A stretch of 58,317 nucleotides of DNA, taken from positions 1-58,317 of the forward strand of contig NIVC01002480.1 of assembly GCA_002269645.1 (NCBI GenBank), written 5' to 3'. The DNA is from Macrostomum lignano (Eukaryota). The notes beneath the pieces are model-generated. The model searched no databases and was not told the origin of the DNA. It saw only the letters and a list, made by a program, of their open reading frames with translations. Each line of letters begins with the position of its first letter. The first letter of the stretch is position 1. This document shows, piece by piece, positions 1,416 through 54,145 of this stretch. The position numbers were made by a program, and so were the translations under genes.

Positions 1416-27830
<26,415 letters not shown>

Positions 27831-27835
27831 CTGCA

Positions 27836-28470
<635 letters not shown>

Positions 28471-28999
28471 TTCAGCTGGATCATGCGCTATCACTTTGAT
28501 TGTCAGTGCTATCCTGTTCGGCCAATGTGTCAGGTTTCTTACCATTTTTCAATGCTTGATTTTTCCGGCTTTTCGGTTAGTCACGAGAAGTTTCTGGCTC
28601 AGTGCATTTTGCCACATGACCAAGACTTCACGATAAAATACACGCTGTATATTGAAGTGCTTTCTCTCTGGTGTTTTGAAGCAAGTTATGACAAAACAAA
28701 CCGTTTCACTTTGCATTGGACTTTACTGGATCAGACCTGGCCCGACATAGCAAGCAGTCAGGCCCATTCCGCGGCCCCCGAGCGCGCACACAAATGCGTA
28801 CGCACTAGGGGTATTAGGGACGGCAATTTGTTTGGGGTACCCCTAGCCGAACCTCGTACCAAAACGCGAAATACGGCGTTTTTTGTATGTTACTCTAATT
28901 GGAAACATTTTAGGCCCCGACGTAAGCTCAAATATGAATGAAAAATGAAAAATGGAAATGCCAGGTATAGTCAGCAATAAGTCTCTCAGTGGTAGACCT

Positions 29000-32118: not shown

Positions 32119-35100
32119 ATGCTACTAGCTTATCCGCAGTTGCTGCTGCTGCTGCTGCAGTTGGCTCCCGGACCAGTCCGGGGGGAGTTCTGGGACTCCG
32201 AGTTCGTGAACAAGCTGTACAGCTTCGTGCGCTACAAAGGCTACTTCGTGTCGCTGTTCCAGCACGCGACCAAGCCTGATCACTTCTTCTACACCCCGCT
32301 GGTGCTGCTGGACAAAGAGAGCGGCCAGTCCTTCTATAATTACCTGCGCGGAGTACAGGAGGTGGACTTCACCGTGCTCATGAGCACGGATGGCCTGCGG
32401 GCGGAGGTGCTGCAGCACCTGGTAGCTGATAAACGGGTCAACTCGCCACACGTTCAGCTCATACCGATGGAGACGGTCAGGTTTACCTTTGCCAGCGCTC
32501 TGCGACGGGGCAGCATGAAGCTGGACTTGGAGACCACGGCGGTGCCTAACAACCACCTGCCGAACAGCCTGCCTATCAAGTTCTATTCGTTCGGGCAGTC
32601 GGAGGCGCGAAAGTTTATGGCGGCGGTGCGAGAGCACCCGGCTATACTGGACCAGCTGGTGCTGGAGTACACCATCACTCAGCAGAGGAGCGCGGAGAAA
32701 CAGGTGCGGGAGCTGGCTGATTGGCGTAGGGGTTGGGATTGAGATAAGTGGGGACAGGAGAGAAAGAGATATGAGACGGTGAGACAGAGAAAGCAGAGAG
32801 GGAGACAGGGAAGAGGGAGACATGGGAGAGGGAGACAGGAGAGAGGAGACAGGAGAGAGAGACAGGAGAGGGAGACAGGAGAGAGAGACAGGAGAGGGAG
32901 ACAGGAGAGGGAGACAGGAGAGAGGGAGACAAGAGGGAGACAGGAGAGACGGGGGGCAGGAGAGAGGGAGAAATGAGAGAGGAAGACAGGAGAGAGGGAG
33001 ATAGGAGAGAGGGAGACAGGAGAGAGGGAGACATGAGAGAGGGAGACAGGAGAGACGGGGGGCAGGAGAGAGGGAGACAGGAGAGAAGGAGACGGGAGAG
33101 AGGGAGACGGGAGAGAGGGAGGCACGGGAGAGAGGGAGACAGGAAAGAGGGAGACAGGAAAGAGGGAGACAGGAGAGAGAGAGACAGGAGAGAGAGGGAG
33201 AAGGAGAGGGAGAGAGACAGGAGAGAGGGAGACAGGAGAGAGGGAGACAGGAGAGAGGGAGACAGGAGAGAGGGAGACAGGAGAGAGGGAGACAGGAGAG
33301 AGGGAGACAGGAGAGAGAGAGAGACAGGAGAGAGAGAGAGACAGGAGAGAGGGAGACAGGAGAGAGGGAGACAAGAGAGAGGGAGACGGGAGAGGGAGAC
33401 AGGAGAGACGGGGGGCAGGAGAGAGGGAGGCAGGAGAGAGGGAGACGGGAGAGAGGGAGGCAGGAGAGAGGGAGACAGGAGAGAGGGAGGCAGGAGAGAG
33501 GGAGGCAGAATGGAGCACCACTGCACACAAAGTGCCGCCGTCCCCCAGGTGGAGATCAAGGCGGAGTACATCGCCAGCACGGCCCTGTTCGCCAAGCTGA
33601 CCACCATGACGGCCCCCGGCACAGTCCGCTACCTGACTGCCCACGACGCCAACGCGATCGCCAGCCAGAGCTACTCCAGCATCCGGGCCCGAGTGGTCCG
33701 CAGTCAGGAGTACATCGAAGGCCCGGACGAGGTCCGCCTAACCGAGCTCATCCAGCAGCTGCTCACCAGAAATGCCGCCACCTGGTCGCAGCTGAACGAA
33801 GCCGCCAGACAATCGGTGTTCTGGGACCCGACGTTCGCGCGACCGGACGAGGTCAGCCACCTGTTGAACCGGGTCTACGAGCGCGAGTCCGGCACGGACA
33901 GGCGGCTGAAGGTCAGCGAAGATCAGCGCCAGCTGCTGGAGACCCAGTCGGCTCAGTCCACCGCCTGCTACATATTCAAGTGCGAGGGCGACAGCTCCGA
34001 GTCCAGCCTGAGGCTCGACACCAGACAGAGGCTGACCGAGGAGGAGATGAGGCAGTTTCTCAACGAGAGGCAGCTGGAAGTTGAGTACACTGGCCGGCTG
34101 TTTGTAGTGAAAAACATGAAGCTGTTCAGAGTCAACACGGCCGAGTTCCAGTCCGGACAGACCATCGCCACCTCGTCTGTGCAGGTGCGCGATTCCCGCC
34201 GGCTTGGGGATTGCGTTGCTGGAAACGGGATATAGGGGGTGGGATACCTCTGGGATGGGATACCTCTGGGATGGGATATCTCATGGGATATCTCTGGGAT
34301 GGGATACCTCTAGGATGGGATATCTCTGGTATGGGATATCTCTGGGATGGGATATCTCTGGGATGGGATATCTCTGGGATGGGATATCTCTGGGATGGGA
34401 TATCTCTGGGATGGGATATCTCTGGGATGGGATATCTCTGGGATGGGATATCTCTGGGATGGATACCTCTGGGATGGGATATGGGATGGGATACCTCTGG
34501 GATGGGATATGGGATGGGATACCTCTGGGATGGGATATGGGATGGGATACCTCTGGGATGGGATATCTCTGGGATGGGATATCTCTGGGATGGGATATCT
34601 CTGGGATGGGATATCTCTGGGATGGGATATCTCTGGGATGGGATATCTCTGGGATGGGATATCTCTGGGATGGGATATCTCTGGGATGGGATATCTCTGG
34701 GATGGGATACCTCTGGGATGGGATACCTCTGGGATGGGATATCTCTGGGATGGGATATCTCTGGGATGGGATACCTCTCGGATGGGATATCTATGAGATG
34801 GGATATCTGAGGTGTACGGGATAACAATCAGATGGGATATCTAAGGGGCTGAGATACTTATTGGATGGGATATCTCTGGTATGGTATATCTCTGGCATGG
34901 GATACCTCTGGGATGGGATATCTCTGGGATGGGATATCTCTGGGATGGGATACCTCTGGGATGGGATATCTCTGGGATGGGATACCTCTGGGATGGGATA
35001 TCTCTGGGATGGGATATGGGATGGGATACCTCTGGGATGGGATATCTCTGGGATGGGATATCTCTGGGATGGGATATCTCTGGGATGGGATATCTCTGGG

Positions 35101-37729
35101 ATGGGATATCTCTGGGATGGGATATCTCTGGGATGGGATATCTCTGGGATGGGATATCTCTGGGATGGGATATCTCTGGGATGGGATATCTCTGGGATGG
35201 GATATCTCTGGGATGGGATATCTCTGGGATGGGATATCTCTGGGATGGGATATCTCTGGGATGGGATATCTCTGGGATGGGATATCTCTGGGATGGGATA
35301 TCTCTGGGATATGGGATACCTCTCGGATGGGATATCTATGAGATGGGATATCTGAGGTGTATGGGATAACCATCAGATGGGATATCTAAGGGGCTGAGAT
35401 ACTTATTGGATGAGATATCTATGAGATACCATGAGATACCAGGCGGGTGGGGTCTAATAAAGCAATAGAAAACTCGGGAGTAGCGAAATCGCAGGATATC
35501 AGTTATCTAAGATCAAGACGCAACACAATGTTCACTCCGCAGGTGACCAAGAAGCAGGAGCTGCACACCTTGAAGCTGAAGACGGATCCCGAGCTGCCCG
35601 GTGACAGCACGGCGGTCAGCCGAGCTGCCTGCCCCAGCGCGCCCTACACCTACAAGGGCTGCTACGAGGACAGCGCCACCGCGCCTGATCTGAACGGATT
35701 CAACTATCAGTCCGCTGACATGGAGGTTTGCTCGGGAGTGGGCGTTCTGTTGTGGGAGTGACTGGCAACCAATTCTTAACCATAGCAACCAATTCTCAGC
35801 CATAGCAACCAATTCCCAGCCATAGCAACCAATTCTCAGCCATAGCAAACAATTCTCCGCCATAACAACCAATTCTCAGTCATAGCAACCAATTATCAAC
35901 CATAGCAACCAATTCTCCGCCATAGCAACCAATTCTCAGTCATAGCAACCAATTATCAACCACAGCAACCAATTCTTAACCATGGCAACCAATTCTCAGC
36001 CATAGCAACCAATTCTCAGCCATAGCAACCAATTCTCCGCCATAACAACCAATTCTCAGTCATAGCAAACAATTCTCCGCCATAACAACCAATTCTCAGT
36101 CATAGCAACCAATTATCAACCATAGCAACCAATTCTCCGCCATAGCAACCAATTCTCAGTCATAGCAACCAATTATCAACCACAGCAACCAATTCTTAAC
36201 CATGGCAACCAATTCTCAGCCATAGCAACCAATTCTCAGCCATAGCAACCAATTCTCCGCCATAACAACCAATTCTCAGTCATAGCAACCAATTATCAAC
36301 CATAGCAACCGATTCTTAACCATGGCAACCAATTCTCAGCCATAGCAACCAATTCTCAGCCATAGCAACCAATTCTCCGCCATAACAACCAATTCTCAGT
36401 CATAGCAACCAATTATCAACCATAGCAATCGATTCTTAGCCATAGCAACTAATTCTCAGCCATAGCAACCAATCCTCAGCCATAGCAACCAATTCTCAGC
36501 CATAGCAACCAATTCTCAGCCATAGCAACCAATTCTCAGCCATAGCAACCAATTCTCAGCCATAGCAACCAATTCTCAGCCATAGCAACCAATTCTCAGC
36601 CATAGCAACCAATTCTCAGCCTTAGCAACAAGTGAATGCGTAACCATAGCAACCAATGTCCGCCACGCAGGCCAGCCAGTGCTACAAGCAGTGCTCAGGC
36701 CGCGGCTTCGCCTACTTCGGCCTGCAGTCGGGCGATCGTTGCAGCTGCGGCGCCGCTGTCGGTCGCTACCAAATGCGCCCGGACTCCGAATGCGCCGACG
36801 CCTGCGCTGGCGACGCCGGGCAGCGTTGCGGCGGTCGACTGCGCAACTCCGTGTTCGCTGTGGACCGGCCAGCAGCCTCGTCGGCCTCGACCAGCAGCTC
36901 GACTGCTCATCCTGACAACGTGTACAACTCGACTAAATTCGAATACCGCGGTTGCTATGAGGATTTTGGCGACCTAGCAACGGACAGCAGCCGACAGCCG
37001 TGGCTGACGCAGCGCAGCGACGGCATGACGGTGGAGGCCTGTCATCATTTCTGCGCTGGCGGGCCGCGTCAGCAGCAGCCGTGGTTTCTGCTGCGCGCCG
37101 GCGCCGAGTGTCACTGCCGACGGCGGCTGCCGCACGGCGGCCAGCTGAAGCGGCTCAGCGACGCCGACTGTCGGCAGAGTTGCTCCGGAAACCAGCGGCA
37201 GGCCTGCGGTGGCGGCGGCAGCAGCGGCGGTGGCAAAGCCGCGGTGTCCATCTACGCCGCAGCCAGCCTGCGGCAGAGTGTCGTTTCACCTGGCGGCGGC
37301 GGGTTCGGACCCGACTGGAGCTTCCAGCTGAGCGCAGCCTCCTCCGCTGCTTCATCTCCAGCATCCTCAGCCTCATCATCGTCGGGCGGCTACTCTGAGC
37401 TTGGCTGCCCGGCGGCCGGAGGTGACGCCTTCCTGGAGACGAGCGCGCTGCAGACGCCCGGCCTGACGCCCAACGACTGTCTGGAGTTCTGCCGGGCTGA
37501 CGACACCACGACGAAGTACTTCCGGATCGGGCGCGGCGGTGGCGGGCTGTTCGATGGATTCGGTGGAGATTTCGGTTTCGGTCGCGGTGGCAGCGGCGGC
37601 GGCTTGAGCAGTAGCGACCCCGCCTGCTCCTGCCTGTTCACCATGATGCCGGAGTCGCGAATCCGCTTCGGCTCCGGCCGCTCCGGCGACTGCAGCGGCT
37701 TCAAGTATTTTGCCATCGTAGGTCGCTAG
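32119..37729 (+). CDS. Secreted protein (~820 aa): signal peptide, uncharacterised ~400-aa N-terminal region, two canonical WSC domains and one degenerate WSC-like module
   Basis: Exons 32119-32703, 33549-34184, 35543-35725, 36671-37729 (TAG), all introns phase 0 and GT-AG. Hydrophobic N-terminus [25 protein letters not shown] motifs YKGCYED...CYKQC...[12 protein letters not shown]...C...C.G...CGG and YRGCYED...[10 protein letters not shown]...ECHC...C...C.GN..Q.CGG. Confidence 0.88.
32750..33507 (+). repeat. Intronic GA-rich repeat, ~15-bp unit (GAGAGGGAGACAGGA)
   Basis: Direct repetition within intron 32704-33548. Confidence 0.95.
34240..35440. repeat. Intronic minisatellite, 16-bp unit (GGGATATCTCTGGGAT)
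   Basis: Direct repetition within intron 34185-35542. Confidence 0.96.
35765..36655. repeat. Intronic minisatellite, 20-bp unit (CCATAGCAACCAATTCTCAG)
   Basis: Direct repetition within intron 35726-36670. Confidence 0.96.
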
Positions 37730-37892
37730 CGCTGCCTGTACTGTTTCGACTATGGGCTTCTTATAATCAGTCACAGTGTGCGTGCAGCGATTCTGCGAAT
37801 ACACGATTCGTAGCTCCGCTTGTTTGTTTTTGTTAAACTGATTTTGAATTTCAATTCGTCAATTGCAAATGGATTGAATTCTTTTTTTGCCA

Positions 37893-38632
<740 letters not shown>

Positions 38633-38936
38633 AACATCTAGCATTTCTAACATTTTAAGTAAGCTGTTCAAATGAGCGAGTCTTCCAGTTTAGCCACAAT
38701 CCAAGTCATGCCGAGTGCTTTGTTGCCTTCCTCTTTAGAATTTCCAGTCTGGCGCAGCAGTAAAAACGCGGACCAATTAAGTGCATGTACATGGATAGAC
38801 GATGAATAAGTATTTTCATGTACCTTGCACCCTGCTTGCTCAGAGTGACAGCTACAAATAAGACGGCGCAAAAGTCTCGCCAGATTCTTATTTAAAAACT
38901 TGTAAGGGAGGGGGGCGTGAAGTCTGTGACTCTGGT

Positions 38937-40199
38937 TTACAGAGCGGTCATTGCTACGTCAGCTTGCTGCCCACTTCCGTCACGAGTTGTTAGTTCATGC
39001 CGTCGGTCATGCAGACGCTGAAGGCCAACCAGCTGCCTGGGTGGCCGCTCACTCGCAGCCAGCTGGCGAATGCAGGGTCCGCGGGGCCGGGCGGCGGCCC
39101 GGAACCCAACTCGAAACTGGCGATCTTTCCATAGCAGCACCGCCCAGTTGATGGACTGGTTGATGAGGATCAGAATCTGGCCGATGTCGCTGATGTTGTA
39201 CACTGAGCGAAGGCCGATAACGCCGGCATCGGCGTCGTCACCAAAGACGGTCCGGCGCATGACGATGACGCCGACGGCGCACACGGGCAGGATGGAGATC
39301 AGGAAGATGGCGGACAGCGCCACTACAACCAGAGTCGGCGCCAGTTCCTCCGCCGCTGCCAGTCTGCCGTGTCGTCTGCCACCGCTGCCGACGGAGCTGC
39401 CGCCAAAGAAGTTGCCCGAGGAGCGGCGAAGACGGCAAAGCCGCACAAGAAGAAGAATGTTGCACACTGACACGGCCAGCATCTGGAGGCTGGGCGGCTG
39501 CAGCAGTAACACGGTCGAGAAGATGGTCCACAGACGCACGGAGTCGCCATAGAAAGGCACTGGAAGGCAGGCGATGCGGCCGCCGCCGCCCTGCACCAGG
39601 CGGTGCCAGCCCCAGAATGCTGGCACGGGGCCGGCCATGGCGATGGTCGCCACGAAGGCGCCGGTGGCCGCCTTGGCCGCCGAGCGGAGGCTGAGCGAGC
39701 GCGCCTTCAGCGGCCGGTAGAGGGCGTTCAGACGGTCCAGCGTCATCAGCAGGAACCAGTTGGCCGACAGCGCGTGGAAAAAGTTGTGCGCGAACCGGAA
39801 GCCGCGGCACATGCCGTCCGACATGTTGGAGATAATTATCCCAACGCGGCCACCGGAGAGCCAGGGCAGCCCCTTGGCCAGCACCTGCCAGCCCAGGCCC
39901 CAGCAGATGAGGTTGCCCCAGTCCGACAGCGCAATGCAGGCCAGGTAAAAATGCAGCCGAGTTCGCTGACGAATTCGACGAAAGATCACGTGCACCGTGA
40001 GCAGGTTGCCCACCGTTCCCATGGCAACAGCCACCGGGACCACGGCGCCGGCCAGGAAGCCGAGCACGGTGGCCGTGGCGCAGTCGAGACTGGAGCTGTC
40101 CACCAGGCAGTCCACCTGCAAGTCGAGCAGGGTGTCCAGGTAAGAATCGTTCAGGTAGCGCTGCAGCATCTCGCTGCGCTGATCAGGCGACCAGGGCAT
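38937..40199 (-). CDS. Intronless class-A (rhodopsin-like, peptide-receptor-like) orphan GPCR, 420 aa, copy B (intact)
   Basis: Single ORF with seven hydrophobic segments; GN in TM1, LxxSD in TM2, DRL at the end of TM3, Cys in ECL1/TM3 and ECL2, INWAVLL in place of NPxxY. Confidence 0.9.
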   Translation of the reverse strand: MPWSPDQRSEMLQRYLNDSYLDTLLDLQVDCLVDSSSLDCATATVLGFLAGAVVPVAVAMGTVGNLLTVHVIFRRIRQRTRLHFYLACIALSDWGNLICWGLGWQVLAKGLPWLSGGRVGIIISNMSDGMCRGFRFAHNFFHALSANWFLLMTLDRLNALYRPLKARSLSLRSAAKAATGAFVATIAMAGPVPAFWGWHRLVQGGGGRIACLPVPFYGDSVRLWTIFSTVLLLQPPSLQMLAVSVCNILLLVRLCRLRRSSGNFFGGSSVGSGGRRHGRLAAAEELAPTLVVVALSAIFLISILPVCAVGVIVMRRTVFGDDADAGVIGLRSVYNISDIGQILILINQSINWAVLLWKDRQFRVGFRAAARPRGPCIRQLAASERPPRQLVGLQRLHDRRHELTTRDGSGQQADVAMTAL

Positions 40200-40599
40200 T
40201 GCCGGTGGAGAGGCAGCTGAGCTTCTGACCGAGAATTATAGCGTTCTGAACTTTTATCACGGCAAAGCGGTGATGCATATTTCTGATATCGCCCTATTCG
40301 ATTAATATAGTACAGTATATCGGTAAAGTAAAGTATTCCTACGATAACGCTGGGCTAGCAGGTGTGTTTGCACTTCATTCGACCGCGGCCCAAACCGGGG
40401 GTGTGGCATTTCGCGCTATTCCAGACGCAGGGTGTTATCAAAATTCGTTTGCACTCAAATCAATAGCTACAATAATTTATCGAATGTAGGCCTGCATGTA
40501 AAGCCTTCACGTTTGTTATTCTGAAGTCATTTGTTTAAAGGAGTGCCAATCAACTGCTAATCTCTCTGTAACCATAACATTTTCGTGACCCAGAGCACA

Positions 40600-42075
40600 T
40601 CCTTGGGTCGCTCTGTTTGCTCTGAGTGACGAGACCAGTTGGCCTGTTTGCTCTGACGAGACCAGTTGGCCTGTTTGCTCTGACGAGACCAGTTGGCCTG
40701 TTTGCTCTGACGAGACCTGTTGGCCTGTTTGCTCTGACGAGACCTGTTGGCCTGTTTGCTCTGACGAGACCTGTTGGCCTGTTTGCTCTGACGAGACCAG
40801 TTGGCCTGTTTGCTCTGACGAGACCAGTTGGCCTGTTTGCTCTGACGAGACCTGTTGGCCTGTTTGCTCTGACGAGACCTGTTGGCCTGTTTGCTCTGAC
40901 GAGACCAGTTGGCCTGTTTGCTCTGACGAGACCAGTTGGCCTGTTTGCTCTGACGAGACCAGTTGGCCTGTTTGCTCTGACGAGACCTGTTGGCCTGTTT
41001 GCTCTGAGTGACGAGACCAGTTGGCCTGTTTGCTCTGACGAGACCTGTTGGCCTGTTTGCTCTGACGAGACCAGTTGGCCTGTTTGCTCTGACGAGACCA
41101 GTTGGCCTGTTTGCTCTGACGAGACCTGTTGGCCTGTTTGCTCTGACGAGACCTGTTGGCCTGTTTGCTCTGACGAGACCAGTTGGCCTGTTTGCTCTGA
41201 CGAGACCAGTTGGCCTGTTTGCTCTGACGAGACCAGTTGGCCTGTTTGCTCTGACGAGACCTGTTGGCCTGTTTGCTCTGAGTGACGAGACCAGTTGGCC
41301 TGTTTGCTCTGACGAGACCTGTTGGCCTGTTTGCTCTGACGAGACCTGTTGGCCTGTTTGCTCTGACGAGACCTGTTGGCCTGTTTGCTCTGAGTGACGA
41401 GACCTGTTGGCCTGTTTGCTCTGACGAGACCAGTTGGCCTGTTTGCTCTGACGAGACCTGTTGGCCTGTTTGCTCTGACGAGACCTGTTGGCCTGTTTGC
41501 TCTGAGTGACGAGACCAGTTGGCCTGTTTGCTCTGAACGAGACCTGTTGGCCTGTTTGCTCTGACGAGACCAGTTGGCCTGTTTGCTCTGACGAGACCAG
41601 TTGGCCTGTTTGCTCTGACGAGACCAGTTGGCCTGTTTGCTCTGACGAGACCTGTTGGCCTGTTTGCTCTGACGAGACCTGTTGGCCTGTTTGCTCTGAC
41701 GAGACCTGTTGGCCTGTTTGCTCTGACGAGACCAGTTGGCCTGTTTGCTCTGACGAGACCAGTTGGCCTGTTTGCTCTGACGAGACCTGTTGGCCTGTTT
41801 GCTCTGAGTGACGAGACCAGTTGGCCTGTTTGCTCTGACGAGACCAGTTGGCCTGTTTGCTCTGACGAGACCAGTTGGCCTGTTTGCTCTGAACGAGACC
41901 TGTTGGCCTGTTTGCTCTGAGTGACGAGACCAGTTGGCCTGTTTTCCTGACGAAGTTGGCAACGAGACCTGTTGGCCTGTTTGCTCTGAGTGACAAGATT
42001 TTCCAAGTGACAAGACCTGTTGGCCTGTTTGCTCTGAGTGACAAGATCCATTATCCTGTTTGCTGTGAGTGACGA
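40600..42075. repeat. Minisatellite, 27-bp unit (GACGAGACCAGTTGGCCTGTTTGCTCT) with 31-bp variants
   Basis: Direct; about 50 copies; source of the SEQTGQ/RANRPT pseudo-ORFs. Confidence 0.97.
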
Positions 42076-42529
42076 GATTAACTAGCAGGAACTGAAGTTT
42101 GAGGAAAAACTTTGGACGGTTTCTTTTTACGGGTCATTAGCCGAATGAAATAACGCAGGTTAAGCTGAGTTGGCTGCGGTTAGCACGCAGCTATATAGGC
42201 TGTTTGTAGCGTCAAATTAAAAACAGTCACAGAAAAAACAAATCAATAGTAGCCATTTTAAAGCTGCTGCAGCTGATCAATCAGCACTGAATTTATGTTA
42301 AAATATAAAAGTTCCACCACACGGCAAATCTCTTTTATTTAATCACATTTCTCGAATTGTCAACAAGTGGATATCTACAAAATAGCAAAAGTTTTTAATG
42401 ACAATCTAGACACATAAGCCGGCAATGCATTTTCAACTTGTATCGGTTTTATCGGTTGAAAGAGAGAAAGGTTGAAAATTACAGATTTGTCCAGATTAGC
42501 TTCCAAGCGTGGCTGAGTCAAATCTCAAC

Positions 42530-45500
42530 TCAGGGCCGACGACGCTTCGCAGCCTGGCGGCCTTCCTGAACTCCGGACCGAAATTCCTCAGTCATTCGGT
42601 CAGCCAGCGACCTGCCGCTGCCGTCCGACATGATGGCTGTAAAGGCAGTAAATAAAAAAGAACACATTTTCACCATGCTACTTACAGTACGATAACACGA
42701 AGCCTGTTTTCTTCAACATCAAAAGCTGTCAATTAACTTACATTTTCGCAGCTTAAGCAGTACCTGAGCTGTGACCCTGGCTGCTTGCCTAATGATTGGT
42801 GATCGGTACAACTGCAAACAAGATAATTGTTATAATTAAAATAACTAGCATTGTAAACCTACTTAGTACCTAGTACACAATTAGGCCTAGATAACGAGAT
42901 TCTTACCTGTTCTGACAGCTTGTGTTCGTTCTGGGAAATTAGTCTAAAAATGAAAGATAAAATTGCATGTTGTCAAATAAATTTTCAAATTGTAAAGAAG
43001 CTTTTTAGTGAGAAAATATCAATTAAATTATCCTGCATTTGAGCTAAAAATGTTTGAATATTCTTTTAATTTCAGCTGGAGTGCACCATGCCACCTCATA
43101 TATTTGGGAATGATTTCTCAGCTTGGCACTTGTGACTTACATGCCCAGCTATTATTTGAGGATGGTTTGAGGTTGATGGCGTACATAATGAGGTTGTGTA
43201 ACATTAGCACTGACCTTTCTTCACATTTTCTAGTTTAACTCCTAAACAAAACCAGATAAAAGGAAATTCAAATGACAAGTTTTTTGTTGAAAATTTATCT
43301 TTAGTTTGACACATAAACATAAAAATTGGTCATTGGTCATTGGTTTTTAGTTTGTTATTCTACATAAATAATGAATTCAAAAATGGAAAATGCATACAAA
43401 ACAGTGTACATAATGGAAAACATTTTTAGTCCTGGCATACAAATGTAGTCCTGTACTTTCTCCTAATGAACATGGCATACACATAATACACAAATCTAAA
43501 CTATGGTCTGTATTAAAAAATTTAAATATTATTATAATTGTAATTTTAGTGACATTAAAAAAAGAAAAATACATAAATTTCAAAATAAGATTATTATTTT
43601 CTTTTATCTTCTTTATCTTATTTTATGACTAGGGCCTTAATGCATTTTGCAGAACATATAGTATAATTTGTTATATTGCTATATAATAGCTAACTATATA
43701 CTAGGCCTAATGCAAGGTGTGCATTTCTTTTTTCTTGGCATACTGCACACAATTAAAAATTTGACTGAGGATTTGTTATGGCCATAGTCAAGAATATGGA
43801 CTTTTTCATGAAAAATTCCAATGCAAAAAGGGGTTGGACATGCGCTATACTGGCACATTCTGGTGCAAAAGTAGGCAAAGGAGAAAAATCTGATGCAATA
43901 TGGCATGGCACAAAGACAAAAAAATTAGCACAATTTGGTGCAATTTGGTGCAAGACAAAAACACTTCCAATGAGACAATATTTTCTCCAACAAAAATAGC
44001 ATGTAATTTCTTTTTATTAGCACTTTTTGTTTGCTAGTATATTGATGACTTTTAATTAATTAACATTAACATTGTATTTTCTATGAAACAGAATAAAATA
44101 TAAGTTTTACTAGTAAAGTTGCAATATATGGCAGGAGCAAACTTTTTTTATGGGAATAGTTCCGGCGCATGGTGCAAGCCAGGGTCAGGATTGTGTACTA
44201 CTATATGCTGGAATGAAAATTGCTTCCATAGCTCATGTATACCAATGTATGCCAACAAACTTTTTATTGTATACAAAAATATGCCAAAATAAAAATACAA
44301 ATTACAACCAATATTAACAGCTTGCAAAACTAAGGTAAACCTGGTTTTTTAAATTAAGTTTTCTGTTTTTTGTAAAGGGCGAGCTATTCTTTCTGATCAA
44401 AATTTAGCTACTGTAACTATGTACATCAGTACATAGAAACTAGGCCCTACACCAAATGTAAACTTTTAATTTTTGTATGTTAATTGTGTCGATTGATTGG
44501 GACTTGGAACTTTTGGTCCCACTTGCTGTCTAGGAAATCTCTATATGCTAAGCTATATGCCAAGAGGGCACGCCAGGCCTATCTGTACGCCAAGTTGTAG
44601 GCTCATTCTAGATAATGTGTGGGTTCCCCGACAGATATTCACCCGACAGATATATTTTTCTTCGGGCAGATAATTCAAACAAAAAATGAATTTATGTTTC
44701 GGGATACATTTCTTACTCTGACGCCATATTCAGCTTTAAAAATTTGTAAGCAGAATTTTTCTGACCCAAAGAAAAAAAAATTGGCATGAATGCAGTGTGT
44801 CAAAAGACGAATTCATTGGCACCCATTACAAACACATTTTGGAAGCAAATATCTCGGGAAATACAAAAGGAAATCACGTGTCTAAGATGTCATTGCAAAG
44901 CTGAGACATGCGTCAAGAAGTGATAAAAGTTTCAGAGCAAATGATTGAAGCATTGAGACGCAGCGATAAATCAAAGTTTTGGTTTATCTTGGTTGAAGAT
45001 CGTTGATCAACAAAAACTTTGATTTATCGCTGTGTCTCAATGCTTCAATCATTTGCTCTGAAACTTTTATCACTTCTTGACGCATGTCTCAGCTTTGCAA
45101 TGACATCTTAGACACATGATTTCCTTTTGTATTTCCCGAGATATTTGCCTCCAAAATGTGTCTGCAATGGGTGCCAATGAATTCGTCTGAATCTGTCGGG
45201 TGAATATCCGTCGGGGAACCCACACATTTCTAGATAAGATGGACATATTTGGAAAATAGAAAAGAGTCAATATTTTTGCTTACCATTGCCTTATCAGCCA
45301 TTTTTTTTGCCAAATGTTTTAGGTGTGTAATATATACAATCTAAGAATATATTAATGGTAAAATGTTGGATTAGTATATTATCAATAGGCAAAAAGTCAT
45401 TTTTGGAAAAATTTGGACATTTTTCTAAGCAAAAGACATCATTAACTTTGTGTACCTTTTAAAAACAAATAGAAAGCTTTGGGAGTTTGAAATAAACTAT

Positions 45501-47860: not shown

Positions 47861-50800
47861 TTAATGCCAACGAAGCTTAACAGTTTCATCAGATCTATCT
47901 GCTGTTGAATGAGTCGAATTAGGTGCCATCGAGGAGTTTCTGTTCGAGCAGTGCGGCTCGCGACTTGGTCGCTTCAAAGAATAAATCAGGAAGTCCAGCA
48001 CGTACATCTGTCGAGGGGTTACGTAGTGAAACGATATCGAGGTATCGCTACAGCATTCGGGACCCTGGAATTAAAGGTGGTGTGGGAAGATGCTTTTTAC
48101 TAACAACTGCTTAAACACAATGGGAATTTCTGTTTAGGCATAACCAAGGTACAGAACTCTGAGCCCCAGTCTGAGCACAGGGTGGAGTCCCAGTCTGAGC
48201 ACAGGGTGGAGTCCCAGTCTGAGCACAGGGTGGAGTCCCAGTCTGAGCACAGGGTGGAGTCCCAGTCTGAGCACAGGGTGGAGTCCCAGTCTGAGCACAG
48301 GGTGGAGTCCCAGTCTGAGCACAGGGTGGAGTCCCAGTCTGAGCACAGGGTAGAGAGTCCCAGTCTGAGCACAGGGTAGAGAGTCCCAGTCTGAGCACAG
48401 GGTGGAGAGTCCCAGTCTGAGCACAGGGTGGAGTCCCAGTCTGAGCACAGGGTGGAGTCCCAGTCTGAGCACAGGGTGGAGTCCCAGTCTGAGCACAGGG
48501 TGGAGTCCCAGCTCCATCGTATCAGCTCACCTCTCGCAGAGGATAATAATTGTAGCGGCGCAGCCAGTTACCAGGCGGAATGCCGCCCGGAGGCAGGTGT
48601 TGCTCGGGCTGGAACGGGTGAAATCTCTCTCGGCCAAGGCTGTCCAGCGAGTTCAGCACGCGTACGCCGAGCATGTTCATACAGGAGCCTGGGATCAGTG
48701 CGTTAGTAGTGAGATATATAAAAATTTCATGTAGTACTAGACTACTGGTATATAAAACAATATTTAATTTTTTAAAGTAGTTGCAAGACTTATAGTCCAA
48801 AAAGTACTTTCAAAGTTTATAGTCCAGAATAGTACTTTCAAATCAAAGGATATGCTTCTGGAGGTCTAGGATGTTTATAAAAATTAAAGAAACAGTTTTA
48901 AAGTGCAATATCTACTTTAGAAAGCTCTCCTAAAGGCCTCTTAAGATTGCAGGATGATTCCAATAAAGTACACGAAGCACTTTAACATCGGAGCAAGCGC
49001 GCACCCAGATTAACGTCCTCGCTAATAAACTGGCCAGAGCAGGCGGAGTCCCGGCTAGGCAGGCCCAGGTCAACAAATTTGCGCACGGCTGCTCTAGACA
49101 GCACGTAGCCGGCCCCGCCGGACATGTAACCCTGCCGGACAAATGGCCGGAATCTCCGGCCGCTGTACAACGGCTCGTCGGGATCAGCGTCGGCCAGCAG
49201 ACTGCGCAGGTTGTCAATCACTACGTAGGTGTCGTCGTCGGCCTTCAAAAAGAAATCGTACTTGGCTAGAAGGCCGCTGCGTTGAAGATAGCTCAGAGCC
49301 GCTGTGGTCTTCTTCCACAGATTGGCCCGACCTTCGGGCACGTCCAGGGCTGCGGAGGTGGCCAGTTTGAGCAGGATGTGCTTGGGATTCGGAGGCACTG
49401 ATCTACCAGTGACCAACTTGGGATTCGGAGGCACTGATCTACCACAGTGACCAACTTGGGATTCAGAGGCACTGATCTACCAGTGACCAACTTGGGATTC
49501 GGAGGCACTGATCTACCACAGTGACCAACTTGGGATTCAGAGGCACTGATCTACCACAGTGACCAACTTGAGATTCGGAGGCACTGATCTACCACAGTGA
49601 CCAACTTGGGATTCAGAGGCACTGATCTACCAGTGACCAACTTGAGATTTGGAGGCACTGATCTACCACAGTGACCAACTTGGGATTCAGAGGCACTGAT
49701 CTACCACAGTGACCAACTTGAGATTCGGAGGCACTGATCTACCACAGTGACCAACTTGGGATTCGGAGGCACTGATCTACCACAGTGACCAACTTGAGAT
49801 TCGGAGGCACTGATCTACCACAGTGACCAACTTGGGATTCGGAGGCACTGATCTACCACAGTGACCAACTTGAGATTCGGAGGCACTGATCTACCACAGT
49901 GACCAACTTGAGATTCGGAGGCACTGATCTACCACAGTGACCAACTTGAGATTCGGAGGCACTGATCTACCACAGTGACCAACTTGAGATTCGGAGGCAC
50001 TGATCTACCACAGTGACCAACTTGGGATTCAGAGGCACTGATCTACCACAGTGACCAACTTGGGATTCAGAGGCACTGATCTACCACAGTGACCAACTTG
50101 GGATGCAAAGGCACTGATCTACCACAGTGACCAACTTGAGATTCGGAGGCACTGATCTACCACAGTGACCAACTTGGGATTTGGAGGCACTGATCTACCA
50201 CAGTGACCAACTTGGGATTCAGAGGCACTGATCTACCACAGTGACCAATTGGGATTCAGAGGCACTGATCTACCAGTGACCAACTTGGGATTCAGAGGCA
50301 CTGATCTACCACAGTGACCAACTTGGGATGCAAAGGCACTGATCTACCACAGTGACCAACTTGAGATTCAGAGGCACTGATCTACCAGTGACCAACTTGG
50401 GATGCAAAGGCACTGATCTACCACAGTGACCAACTTGGGATTCGGAGGCACTGATCTACCACAGTGGCAAACTGAGGTTGAAGAAGCGCAAACAGATTAC
50501 CATGAGAGCTCACCAACAGAAGGCAGAGACGGATCAGAAACGGTGCTCATAAAGGTGTACCCGTTGCATCTGGACAACCAGGTTGACTTCACGTGATAAG
50601 CCTTACTGGCGTGATTCTCCGGCGAGGTGACTACCCAGCAGAAAATTCGAACCCGCGACCATAGTGGATCGCCGCTAGACCGAGGCTGTTTCTTGACAGA
50701 CTGCGGCCCGGGCTGCAGTGGCTGCTGGAGCTCCACATGTGGCAGATAGGCCTGAGAGGCTGGACGCCAGCAGTTGCGCTGTTGCCAGGCCGGGAACAGG

Positions 50801-50868
50801 CCCAGACTGATGATGCTGCCCAGGCAGAAGGAGACTGCGCAGCTGCCTAGCAACAGGCAGTTCCGCAT
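47861..50868 (-). CDS. C1GALT1: Glycoprotein-N-acetylgalactosamine 3-beta-galactosyltransferase 1 (core-1 synthase, GT31 family), ~353 aa
   Basis: Exons 50514-50868, 49005-49349, 48531-48688, 47861-48064, phase-consistent. Type II membrane anchor, RVRIFCWVVTSPENH, YDFFLKADDDTYV (DxD motif), GYMSGGAGYVLS, EDVNLG, RERFHPF, CCSDTSISFHYV. Confidence 0.95.
48165..48512. repeat. Intronic minisatellite, 24-bp unit (GGTGGAGTCCCAGTCTGAGCACAG)
   Basis: Direct repetition within C1GALT1 intron 3. Confidence 0.96.
49380..50465. repeat. Intronic minisatellite, 38-bp unit (GTGACCAACTTGGGATTCGGAGGCACTGATCTACCACA) with 36-bp variants
   Basis: Direct repetition within C1GALT1 intron 1. Confidence 0.96.
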
Positions 50869-52187: not shown

Positions 52188-54145
52188 TCAAGCCTTCTTA
52201 GCCTTGAGCTTATCCAGGTACTGGCCCAGCTGTGCCTGCACCCTACTATCCAGCACGTAGTCGCAGAAAGCGTTCATATCCTCCTGTCTGGCACTGTCCA
52301 ACCGGTTAATCAAATTCGACCTGAGCATCCGCTTTACATCGGCTCGAGCTCGGGGCGACACGGCCAGATAGCGGCTAAGCGTTGATTCCGTCTTCTTCAA
52401 TAGTTCGGCTTCGTTATCGAATAATTCGTCAACTAAACCGGCTTCGAGCGCGGCCTGCGGACCGATCAGCTGGCCGGCAGCAACCAGACGCTCGCAGTTC
52501 CGATTGCCGGCAACAAAACGAAACAATTCAACCAGCCAGACGGGCGGAGCAACTCCAAATTGGGTCTCGTTGAGGCCGGTGAGCAGTTTGGGATTGCTGG
52601 ACATCAGGCGGTAGTCGCTAGATAGGGACAGGGCCATTGCGCCGGCCATGCAGTGGCCCTGGGAATGCCAGGTGTCAATTGTTACCCGTGTGACTTCTGG
52701 CTGCAAGCTTGTTTCACCTGTTCTCACCTGTTGACTAGTTTCACCTGTTCTCACCTGTTGACTAGTTTCACCTATTCTCACCTGTTGACTAGTTTCACCT
52801 GTTCTCACCTTTTGACTAGTTTCACCTGTTGACTAGTTTCACCTGTTGACTAATTTTACCTGTTAACTTGTTTCACCCGTTGACTAGTTTTACCTGTTCT
52901 CACCTATTGACTAGTTTCACCTGTTCTCACCTGTTGACTAGTTTCACCTGTTCACACCTGTTGACTAGTTTCACCTGTTCACACCTGTTGACTAGTTTCA
53001 CCTGTTCACACCTGTTGACTAATTTCACCTGTTGACTTGTTTCACCTGTTCTCACCTGTTGACTAGCTTTACCTGTTCTCACCTATTGACTAGCTTCACC
53101 TGTTGACTTGTTTCACCTGTTGACTTGTTTCACCTGTTGACTTGTTTCACCTGTTCTCACCTGTTGACTAATTTCACCTGTTGACTTGTTTCACCTGTTG
53201 ACTAGTTTTACCTGTTCTCACCTATTGACTAGTTTCACCTGTTCTCACCTGTTAACTAGCTTCATCTGTTCTCACCTGTTGACTAGTTTCACCTGTTCTC
53301 ACCTGTTGAAAAATTTCACCTGTTCTCACCTGTTGACTAGTTTTACCTGTTCTCGCCTATTGACTAGCTTCATCTGTTGACTTGTTTCACCTGTTGACTA
53401 ATTTCACCCGTTGACTTTTTCACCTGTTCTCACCTTTTGACTTATTTCACCCGTTGACTTTTTCACCTGTTCTCACCTTTTGACTAATTTCACCCGTTGA
53501 CTTGTTTCACATGTTCTCACCTGTTGACTTGTTTCACATGTTCTCACCTGTTGACTAATTTCACCTGTTGACTAGTTTCACCTGTTGACTAATTTCACCT
53601 GTTCTCATCTGTTGACTAATTTCACCTGTTGACTAGTTTCACCTGTTCTCATCTGTTGACTAGTTGCACTGTTGTTTATTCGGTAGGCATTTTACCTGTG
53701 ACCGAATTTCCCAGCTAGTAATCACAACAAATCTCACCTGAATCTGAGCAATCACAACAAATCTCACCTGAATCTGAGCAATCACAACCAAATCTGTGCC
53801 AAATAGGTTCAAGAACAGCTCCTGAATCTCAGTGTAGAACTCTATGAGCCGCTCCCTATTGCTACCAGCCAGTTCCGTCAGCTCGAATCCGGCGCTAAAA
53901 ATGCCAGCCAGCTGAGACCGCAGCAGCACGGCCCGAGCGCCGGACTTCTCAGCCTGTAGCAGCGCCTTGTTGAACTGGGCGGCCAGCTCGCCGTTCATAG
54001 CGTTGGCCGGCTTGCGGCAGAGCTCGATTGAAACGACGCCGTCCGAGGCGGACTGTTCGCGCAGCTGCACCAGTTGAGAGGAGCCGGACAGCAAGCGGCG
54101 GCAGCCGGACACGGCTACTCGGCTGAACAGTCGGGTTGGCAGCAT
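52188..54145 (-). CDS. ECI1: Enoyl-CoA delta isomerase 1, mitochondrial-like (crotonase family), ~282 aa
   Basis: Exons 53768-54145 and 52188-52658 (phase 0). Arg/Ser-rich transit-peptide-like N-terminus, KPANAM, FSAGFEL, GHCMAGA, DYRLM, GLNETQFG (catalytic Glu present), ALEAGLVDE. Confidence 0.92.
52705..53662. repeat. Intronic minisatellite, 27-bp and 17-bp units (TTCACCTGTTCTCACCTGTTGACTAGT)
   Basis: Direct repetition within ECI1 intron 52659-53767. Confidence 0.95.

Follow-up and report, generated by a model that had tools for sequence, protein, structure and literature searches.

A secreted-type WSC-domain protein of the flatworm Macrostomum lignano with an N-terminal module from a previously undescribed animal protein family

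Lectin-fused pore-formers of the aerolysin type and cytolytic lectins include natterin-like Dln1, LSL, biomphalysin, and proteins of the CEL-III type. WSC domains are carried by fungal glucanases and oxidases and, among animal proteins, by polycystin-1, KREMEN, and WSCD. They are carbohydrate-binding modules, as described for the structure of the yeast sensor Wsc1 (PMC9024836) and for fungal beta-glucan-binding WSC lectins (PMC9252488; PMC6995588 belongs to the same WSC/glucan literature). Apextrin combines MACPF and ApeC domains, and short ApeC-containing proteins (ACPs) bind peptidoglycan (PMC8361754, PMC9585378). The gene considered here, Mlig008808g3, lies at 32119–37729 on the + strand of a 58,317-nt stretch of the genome of the flatworm Macrostomum lignano (contig NIVC01002480.1, positions 1 to 58,317, of assembly GCA_002269645.1). 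The whole stretch is called “the window” below, and all coordinates refer to it. The gene encodes an 820-amino-acid (aa) protein in which an N-terminal module of ~396 aa (residues 23–418, the “N-module”) is followed by two WSC domains.

Each of these systems resembles the Mlig008808 protein in part. The two canonical eight-cysteine WSC domains are its likeness to yeast Wsc1, the fungal lectins and enzymes, polycystin-1, KREMEN, and WSCD, but none of these has the N-module. Apextrin and the ApeC proteins are alike in being secreted, in joining an N-terminal effector-type module to a C-terminal head that binds microbes or glycans, and in a patchy distribution centered on aquatic invertebrates, and some relatives of the N-module have ApeC-like ends, if weakly matched ones. 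The N-module is not a MACPF domain, however, going by Pfam and the Foldseek matches listed, and the head here is WSC rather than ApeC. With the lectin-aerolysin pore-formers the common points are the pairing of lectin and effector and, in a third of the N-module family, an alternating Ser/Gly-rich variable segment; in contrast, there is no similarity of sequence or fold, the N-module is modeled as mixed alpha+beta with long helices rather than as elongated and all-beta, the lectin part is C-terminal here, and pore formation by the N-module is only a candidate activity. Collectins, ficolins, and C1q-type proteins likewise have a constant N-terminal part, sometimes a coiled coil, with swappable heads, and C1q and C-type lectin heads occur among the relatives; their constant part, however, is a short protease-recruiting stalk, either collagen or Cys-rich, where here it is a globular domain of 400 aa. 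A recognition head joined to a constant module is a variant of a known design, and a database entry for the gene, as a hypothetical protein, already exists. New is the recognition of an undescribed and sizeable animal family with a giant-virus homologue, a confidently predicted fold that has no significant Foldseek match in the Protein Data Bank (PDB), and shuffled recognition heads.

The N-module has no Pfam match up to E = 10 and no NCBIfam match, and no PDB sequence match was obtained with phmmer from the single sequence or with a family profile, as anticipated by the original prediction, which was made from the DNA sequence alone and proposed an unrecognised N-terminal domain of ~400 aa. 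A word-indexed protein search with the single sequence also gave no match, and with a profile of 80 members it found only two proteins, P0001 and P0135. An exhaustive search of 1.84 billion cluster representatives returned 235 matches at E ≤ 1e-3, of which 100 remain at E ≤ 1e-10 and 11 at E ≤ 1e-30; the top ones span the whole module (query residues 2–403). As far as these searches reach, the N-module defines a previously undescribed family, here called the SVFW-RPD module. Eighty members were aligned (alignment A1) for column statistics and structure prediction. Weak Pfam matches to ClpS in seven of these 80 (best E 0.0047), not localised in the module, were treated as noise; they could stem from a small alpha/beta sub-domain or have arisen by chance.

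Every named member comes from an animal, and the sources label all of them uncharacterised. Besides M. lignano they come from the acoel Convolutriloba macropyga, the bdelloid rotifers Rotaria magnacalcarata and R. socialis, the nematodes Plectus sambesii and Panagrolaimus sp., Daphnia magna, and the tardigrade Paramacrobiotus metropolitanus, which has several family paralogues, some of them on one contig. The original prediction had likened two motifs of the protein to uncharacterised expanded families of water fleas, springtails, and bdelloid rotifers; Daphnia and the bdelloids are indeed represented, and springtails are not among the members named. Two metagenomic members are on animal-type contigs with intron-split genes, their neighbours being a 7tm_1/Srw G-protein-coupled receptor (GPCR), membralin, and a clathrin adaptor in one case and a retroelement in the second. 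When GTDB prokaryotic genomes and IMG/VR viral contigs were scanned for the best-conserved motif, which is a narrow test, no relatives came up. Literature searches gave nothing on the gene identifier, on the accessions of its relatives, or on combinations of pore-forming with tardigrade, rotifer, or Daphnia, and the supplements of four M. lignano papers mention neither Mlig008808 nor Mlig026829, a paralogous locus described below. A survey of rotifer lectins (PMC8878817) lists short C1q-domain proteins only, with no description of the N-module.

In the relatives the N-module is always N-terminal, with a variable C-terminal head after it. The partners are Collar (a phage-tail domain), C1q, Xlink, NHL, C-type lectin (Lectin_C), and SRCR domains as well as coiled coils. 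ApeC-like Cys-rich ends give Pfam matches in six of 80 relatives, all of them weak (the best, at E 7.9e-5, does not reach the gathering score); the Mlig008808 protein has no Pfam match to ApeC. Fusion of the N-module to WSC domains was found only in the two M. lignano copies of Mlig008808 among 190 family proteins fetched. By a crude hydrophobicity test, 49 of 93 full-length members have an N-terminal hydrophobic segment. Two tardigrade proteins, P0055 (from P. metropolitanus) and P0103, have no signal peptide and carry the N-module fused to an AIG1/septin-like P-loop GTPase and a Cys-rich region, so the module would also be used inside the cell. Another relative, P0031 (910 aa), combines a piggyBac-type transposase domain (DDE_Tnp_1_7, E 2e-50) with an N-module and a Collar-like tail; the combination probably arose by fusion of gene models or because a transposon inserted beside a family member. 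Overall, the family looks like a constant module with interchangeable recognition heads, an arrangement typical of invertebrate pattern-recognition and effector chimeras. This shuffled-head architecture is the strongest support for the idea of a “lectin-targeted effector” advanced in the original prediction, which the C1q, lectin, SRCR, Xlink, ApeC-like, Collar, NHL, and WSC heads make plausible as an argument by analogy from architecture. The further reading as a toxin was not confirmed.

The gene has four exons (32119–32703, 33549–34184, 35543–35725, and 36671–37729), its ATG-to-stop span being exactly 32119–37729, and its introns all have GT/AG borders and are in phase 0; the joined exons encode the 820 aa. 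It is deposited as PAA57496.1 (hypothetical protein BOX15_Mlig008808g3), with “WSC domain-containing protein” as its only UniRef name, and the exhaustive HMMER search recovered an 820-aa M. lignano protein from public data that corresponds to residues 23–436 at a reported 100% identity. The Mlig_3_7 gene models derive from RNA-seq-guided transcript assembly (PMC5730564), so the splicing deduced from the DNA is transcript-supported. The flatworm gene is real and transcribed. The peptide strings originally quoted for it, at residues 56–65, 112–120 (VQLIPMETV), 284–302, 327–348, and 373–391, are all present.

The genome has a second copy of the gene, Mlig008808g1, at locus L005 on a contig of 226 kb; it has the same four-exon structure, and its translated coding sequence (CDS) is exactly P0001. 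The two CDSs have 18 synonymous and four non-synonymous codon differences and two single-codon indels in a Gly run. The corresponding synonymous and non-synonymous rates are dS ~0.030 and dN ~0.0021, for a dN/dS of ~0.07 and a binomial p of 2e-8 against neutrality, all from a comparison of two genomic copies; the N-module part alone has five synonymous and two non-synonymous differences. The Mlig008808 gene is under purifying selection. Pseudogene status was considered and rejected, given this ratio and an intact open reading frame (ORF) in both copies. The second M. lignano locus, Mlig026829, encodes a paralogue (P0002) with 36% identity, matching query residues 2–403 at 3e-62.

The only 19-mer in the whole protein with a mean Kyte-Doolittle (KD) hydropathy above 1.4 is N-terminal, at residues 2–20 (mean KD 1.5). 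It lies within residues 1–22 (32119–32184, +), judged signal-peptide-like by a hydrophobicity scan. V-R-G precedes EFWDS, the conserved start of the mature protein; in the paralogue P0002 a separate signal-like segment stands immediately before SFWDS, so that the two have a shared start (E/S)FWDS. As was proposed from the outset, the product reads as a soluble protein of the secreted type with no transmembrane segment. The tandem WSC modules of the original prediction are likewise there. WSC domain 1 (residues 442–532; 35645–36862, +, spanning intron 3) matches PF01822 with E 5.8e-17 and 62.1 bits, at residues 444–523 in a whole-protein scan, and WSC domain 2 (residues 558–665; 36938–37261, +) with E 1.3e-14 and 54.6 bits; the whole protein scores 100.3 bits, well above the PF01822 gathering cut-off of 27.8 bits. 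By inspection there are eight Cys in each domain and one more in the linker just upstream of the first. The last 112 residues (709–820; 37391–37726, +) contain six Cys with WSC-like spacing by eye and a Gly-rich insert, and match no Pfam family at E ≤ 10; they look, by inspection only, like a degenerate WSC-like module. Because WSC domains are established as carbohydrate-binding, it is most likely through its C-terminal half that the protein attaches to a polysaccharide surface.

AlphaFold run on the single N-module sequence gave an unusable model (predicted local distance difference test, pLDDT, of 36). With alignment A1 then supplied, mean pLDDT was 87.7, with a predicted template modeling score (pTM) of 0.70 and 287 of 414 residues at a pLDDT of at least 90. 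The model is mixed alpha+beta, with long N-terminal beta-strands, beta-alpha-beta-beta units in the middle, long helices at query positions 204–282, and a beta-rich C-terminal part. An internal duplication of the beta-alpha-beta-beta units was considered and rejected, hhalign comparisons of sub-blocks giving probabilities of at most 2.4% apart from an overlap artefact. Foldseek (3Di+AA) against 350,542 PDB chains found none at E ≤ 1e-3, the best E being 0.25. The 50 PDB matches listed have query-normalised template modeling (TM) scores of at most 0.13, are mostly small ribosomal proteins, and include no aerolysin/ETX-MTX2, MACPF/CDC, or gasdermin chain. The Pfam profiles for aerolysin/ETX-MTX2, MACPF, and gasdermin also have no match in the N-module (E ≤ 10) or in 80 relatives. 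Neither sequence nor model thus supports membership in any known toxin family, and the aerolysin/ETX-MTX2 and MACPF folds named for comparison in the original prediction are not among the matches listed. No known enzyme or structural domain was matched by the N-terminal region either (Pfam, NCBIfam, PDB, and Foldseek).

The sole significant structural match is viral. It is to A0A7S7YF07, an uncharacterised 417-aa protein of Medusavirus stheno T3 in the BFVD collection of predicted viral structures (Foldseek E 5e-15, probability 1.00, 432 aligned columns), at 14% identity and a global TM of 0.35. Going by the two models, the giant-virus protein looks like a complete N-module standing alone, with no heads attached. 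This would point either to exchange between virus and host or to a module more widespread among eukaryotes.

Conservation within A1 is concentrated in two blocks, at residues 283–302 (W.SVFW....RPD......N) and 373–392 (V.W.GE.F..KP..L.R.N), and is lowest in the block that they flank, at ~313–362. The first conserved motif (residues 284–302; 33813–33869, +) contains the only two invariant residues, P294 and D295, together with W287, R293, and N302, each conserved in at least 96% of members; the second is at residues 373–391 (34080–34136, +), with the family consensus V.W.GE.F..KP..L.R.N. Near-invariant positions by the per-column statistics are D228, a Trp at 282, W287, R293, and N302. For the most part the near-invariant residues are Trp, Pro, Phe, and Leu, with no conserved constellation or triad of His, Ser, Cys, or Glu, and the model places the conserved polar ones (Asp, Asn, and Arg) at, or adjacent to, the beginnings of helices (RPD....LN; YL...D). 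Conservation of the N-module therefore looks structural rather than catalytic. The Mlig008808 protein keeps S284, V285, F286, W287, R293, P294, D295, N302, G377, F380, K383, R389, and N391 of the family motifs.

Between the two motifs is a Gly/Ser-rich hypervariable segment (residues 318–358; 33915–34037, +), which includes residues 327–348 (33942–34007), the stretch originally read as an amphipathic beta-hairpin with a Cys pair. Family-wide, this segment has 11.0% Gly and 14.6% Ser, vs. 2.6% and 9.0% in the rest of the module. Alternation was scored as the two best non-overlapping 8-residue windows of strict polar/hydrophobic pattern, with 500 composition-preserving shuffles per sequence; beta-type alternation at p < 0.05 was found in 23 of 76 members, where ~3.8 would be expected (binomial 1.5e-12). 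Some of these resemble textbook hairpins, as in P0108 (LNIDTAITVPDIFDVKFNTDIEH; LNIDTAITV-PD-IFDVKFNTDIE) and P0078 (SVGLPGVAEVRSKIDVDVSLDVS). The alternation indicates, for many members, a beta-hairpin of which one face is buried, which is not the same as membrane insertion. In the Mlig008808 protein, only seven of the 22 residues at 327–348 are hydrophobic, and the net charge over the 41-residue segment is -2; AlphaFold renders the segment as coil and short helices at pLDDT 56–67, with no hairpin. Of the proposed hairpin, the Cys pair is present and alternation is seen in the family, but in this protein's own segment the alternation is not significant (p = 0.13), and a predicted fold with no membrane-inserting hairpin weakens the toxin reading for this protein. 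The pair consists of C335 and C340, the only cysteines in the N-module, which bracket YIFK (33966–33983) and may form an exposed hydrophobic loop, stapled by a disulfide and confined to this lineage. Set against the family, the Mlig008808 protein has lost three conserved Trp and a conserved Cys pair and has gained this C-YIFK-C loop.

For the present, the best overall explanation, which falls somewhat short of being probable, is that of a two-part extracellular recognition protein in which the N-module is the output half and the WSC domains do the targeting. The WSC half would dock to beta-glucan- or chitin-type walls of microbes or food, or to the glycan matrix of the worm itself, and would supply target specificity in the flatworm lineage. 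Because the N-module stays constant across the family while the heads fused to it change, it would serve as the effector (output) part, and the protein as a whole would belong to the modular pattern-recognition type known from invertebrates. After docking it would act non-enzymatically on the bound surface (the least certain step), possibly by oligomerisation and rearrangement of the Gly/Ser-rich segment clamped between the two most conserved motifs. Insertion into a membrane, or pore formation, by the clamped segment is the leading specific mechanism, and as such is still unlikely.

Several points weigh against this explanation. There is no fold likeness to a known effector, toxin, or enzyme, for which reason the label “effector” is taken from architecture alone. 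Ligand specificity is not established for animal WSC domains, and Xlink, C1q, NHL, SRCR, and WSC domains are found in extracellular-matrix and signaling proteins as well. The interval between the motifs ranges from 31 to 221 aa across the family, the segment being nearly absent in some members, and such tolerance of length fits a disordered linker as well as it fits a functional hairpin. In the Mlig008808 protein itself the segment is polar and of low model confidence, with p = 0.13 in the alternation test (p = 0.93 for the paralogue P0002). Literature searches turned up no experimental or expression data for the gene or any relative. This copy is also a divergent one. It has R282 where 99% of the family has Trp and A141 where 93% does, and S157 and A163 replace the conserved Cys pair (72% and 92%). 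Other departures are S89 (Trp in 77%), Y375 (Trp in 78%), and I153 (Phe in 89%); P0002 retains W282 and both Cys. Whatever activity was ancestral in the family may therefore not be shared by this protein. Because it combines such divergence with strong purifying selection, Mlig008808 would seem to be a lineage-specific, still functional derivative, not a typical family member.

The clamped segment is central to the most specific of the competing explanations, namely that the N-module is a new beta-pore-forming or membrane-attack module, with a new fold, in which a Gly/Ser-rich pre-stem hairpin inserts after WSC docking and oligomerisation. The position of the segment between the two most conserved motifs and its beta-type alternation in 23 of 76 members (P0108, for example) are in keeping with this, as are the non-catalytic look of the conservation and the cytosolic versions fused to AIG1-like GTPases, and the joining of lectin to effector recalls apextrin (MACPF+ApeC) and the natterin-type lectin-aerolysin chimeras. 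Alternation by itself, however, indicates only a hairpin with one buried face, and the segment, besides being modeled as low-confidence coil and short helices, is nearly absent in some members and an interval of 100–220 aa in others; with no PDB pore-former among the Foldseek matches listed, and with the alternation values of the protein's own segment and that of its paralogue (above), a pore-forming N-module is doubtful. The wider claim that SVFW-RPD founds a new superfamily of membrane-attack or pore-forming immune effectors, of a fold unrelated to aerolysin, MACPF/CDC, and gasdermin, present in meiofaunal animals and as a giant-virus copy, and delivered by swappable heads or an intracellular GTPase so that its Gly/Ser-rich segment inserts, is, taken whole, rather improbable. 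The N-module might instead be a non-lytic scaffold that oligomerises or presents its heads multivalently, as an agglutinin, an opsonin, or a cross-linker of extracellular matrix, mucus, or glycocalyx. In many relatives the module is followed by coiled-coil regions and heads of trimeric type (C1q, Collar), Xlink, C1q, NHL, SRCR, and WSC domains all occur in matrix proteins, and there is no catalytic signature. Yet a globular module of 400 aa is far bigger than known lectin oligomerisation stalks, the coiled coils already oligomerise many members, and the signal-less GTPase fusions P0055 and P0103 are ill-suited to a matrix role, so that this explanation too is unlikely.

Two further possibilities are weaker. 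An enzyme would place the protein in a common secreted architecture, a catalytic domain with a carbohydrate-binding module (CBM), the N-module being a new hydrolase or lyase active on glycans or cell walls and the WSC domains its CBM-like parts, as on the fungal glucanases and oxidases; the near-invariant D228 and D295 could in principle be catalytic. In the model, however, both are at helix N-termini by Pro (RPD) and look like capping residues, heads such as C1q, SRCR, and GTPase are not CBM-like, and no similarity to any enzyme was found in Pfam, NCBIfam, PDB sequences, or folds; an enzymatic N-module is accordingly very improbable. The losses of Trp at columns where it is conserved at 99%, 93%, and 77%, and of the Cys pair, in a protein whose paralogue P0002 keeps W282 and both Cys, could also mean that this is a decaying or neofunctionalised copy whose N-module has lost its function and which survives only as a WSC lectin. 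Against such decay are the overall dN/dS of ~0.07 (with five synonymous to two non-synonymous differences in the N-module), the ORF, intact in both genomic copies, the retention of the RPD, N302, and GxxF..K..L.R.N motifs, and the confident AlphaFold model obtained for the protein's own sequence, all of which leave it little credence.

In the arrangement of the gene, exon 1 (32119–32703, +; residues 1–195), with its ATG at 32119 and a GT donor at 32704, encodes the signal-like segment and the first half of the N-module. Exon 2 (33549–34184, +; residues 196–407) encodes the second half, including both conserved motifs and the variable segment; exon 3 (35543–35725, +; residues 408–468) the end of the module (at about residue 418, 35575), the linker, and the start of WSC1; and exon 4 (36671–37729, +; residues 469–820, with the stop codon TAG at 37727–37729) the remainder of WSC1, WSC2, and the degenerate WSC-like C-terminal module with its Gly-rich insert. 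Each of the three introns consists almost entirely of a different minisatellite, with units of 15, 16, and 20 bp in 43–73 copies, as found by Tandem Repeats Finder (TRF). Intron 1 (32704–33548, +; GT/AG) contains 48.5 copies of a 15-bp repeat at 32787–33508, intron 2 (34185–35542, +; GT/AG) 72.9 copies of a 16-bp repeat at 34236–35387, and intron 3 (35726–36670, +), which splits WSC1, 43.2 copies of a 20-bp repeat at 35765–36629. The lengths of the three introns are 845, 1358, and 945 bp here vs. 915, 556, and 1345 bp in the second genomic copy, indicating rapid change in repeat copy number. Long ORFs on the minus strand or in other frames of this region (e.g., 32125–33528, -) were rejected as genes, being translations of tandem repeats.

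Downstream of the gene, 37730–44599 is collinear with the second genomic copy at L005. A single-exon gene for a rhodopsin-type GPCR (7tm_1, E 3e-12) lies in this region at 38937–40199, 1.2 kb downstream and on the opposite (-) strand, with an inverted partial duplicate at 18887–20051 (+), ~19 kb upstream, that is 98.7% identical over 824 bp and 84% over 279 bp. (AGAC)n/(GTCT)n microsatellites at ~4975–5430, 22300–23000, 23600–24100, 27800–28500, and 37894–38636 are the source of pseudo-ORFs reading “CLSVCLSV” and “DRQTDRQT”; simple and tandem repeats make up 15% of the M. lignano genome (PMC5730564). Other genes in the window, at 48982–50868 (-) and 52188–54145 (-), include a Fringe/C1GALT1-like glycosyltransferase and enoyl-CoA hydratase-like exons, the latter assigned by eye only; the glycosyltransferase was named from a Pfam match on the L005 neighbour and a DDD motif in the window ORF.

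M. lignano is amenable to RNA interference. The question of what the N-module does is testable, since transgenesis exists for M. lignano (PMC5730564), Daphnia parasite models are established, and the proteins are small enough to express; the divergence of the Mlig008808 copy is a caveat when generalising from it to the family. Even if the module is not lytic, its confidently predicted new fold, its ~235 cluster representatives, and its giant-virus homologue recommend it for structure determination and for a new Pfam entry, and if a membrane-attack device were proven it would be a categorically new system. If the N-module is an effector, it would represent a widespread, uncharacterised arm of invertebrate extracellular defence or feeding biology, in which one constant module of ~400 aa, with a fold absent from the PDB, is combined with most of the classical pattern-recognition heads in tardigrades, bdelloids, flatworms, acoels, free-living nematodes, and Daphnia, animals whose immunity is poorly understood.

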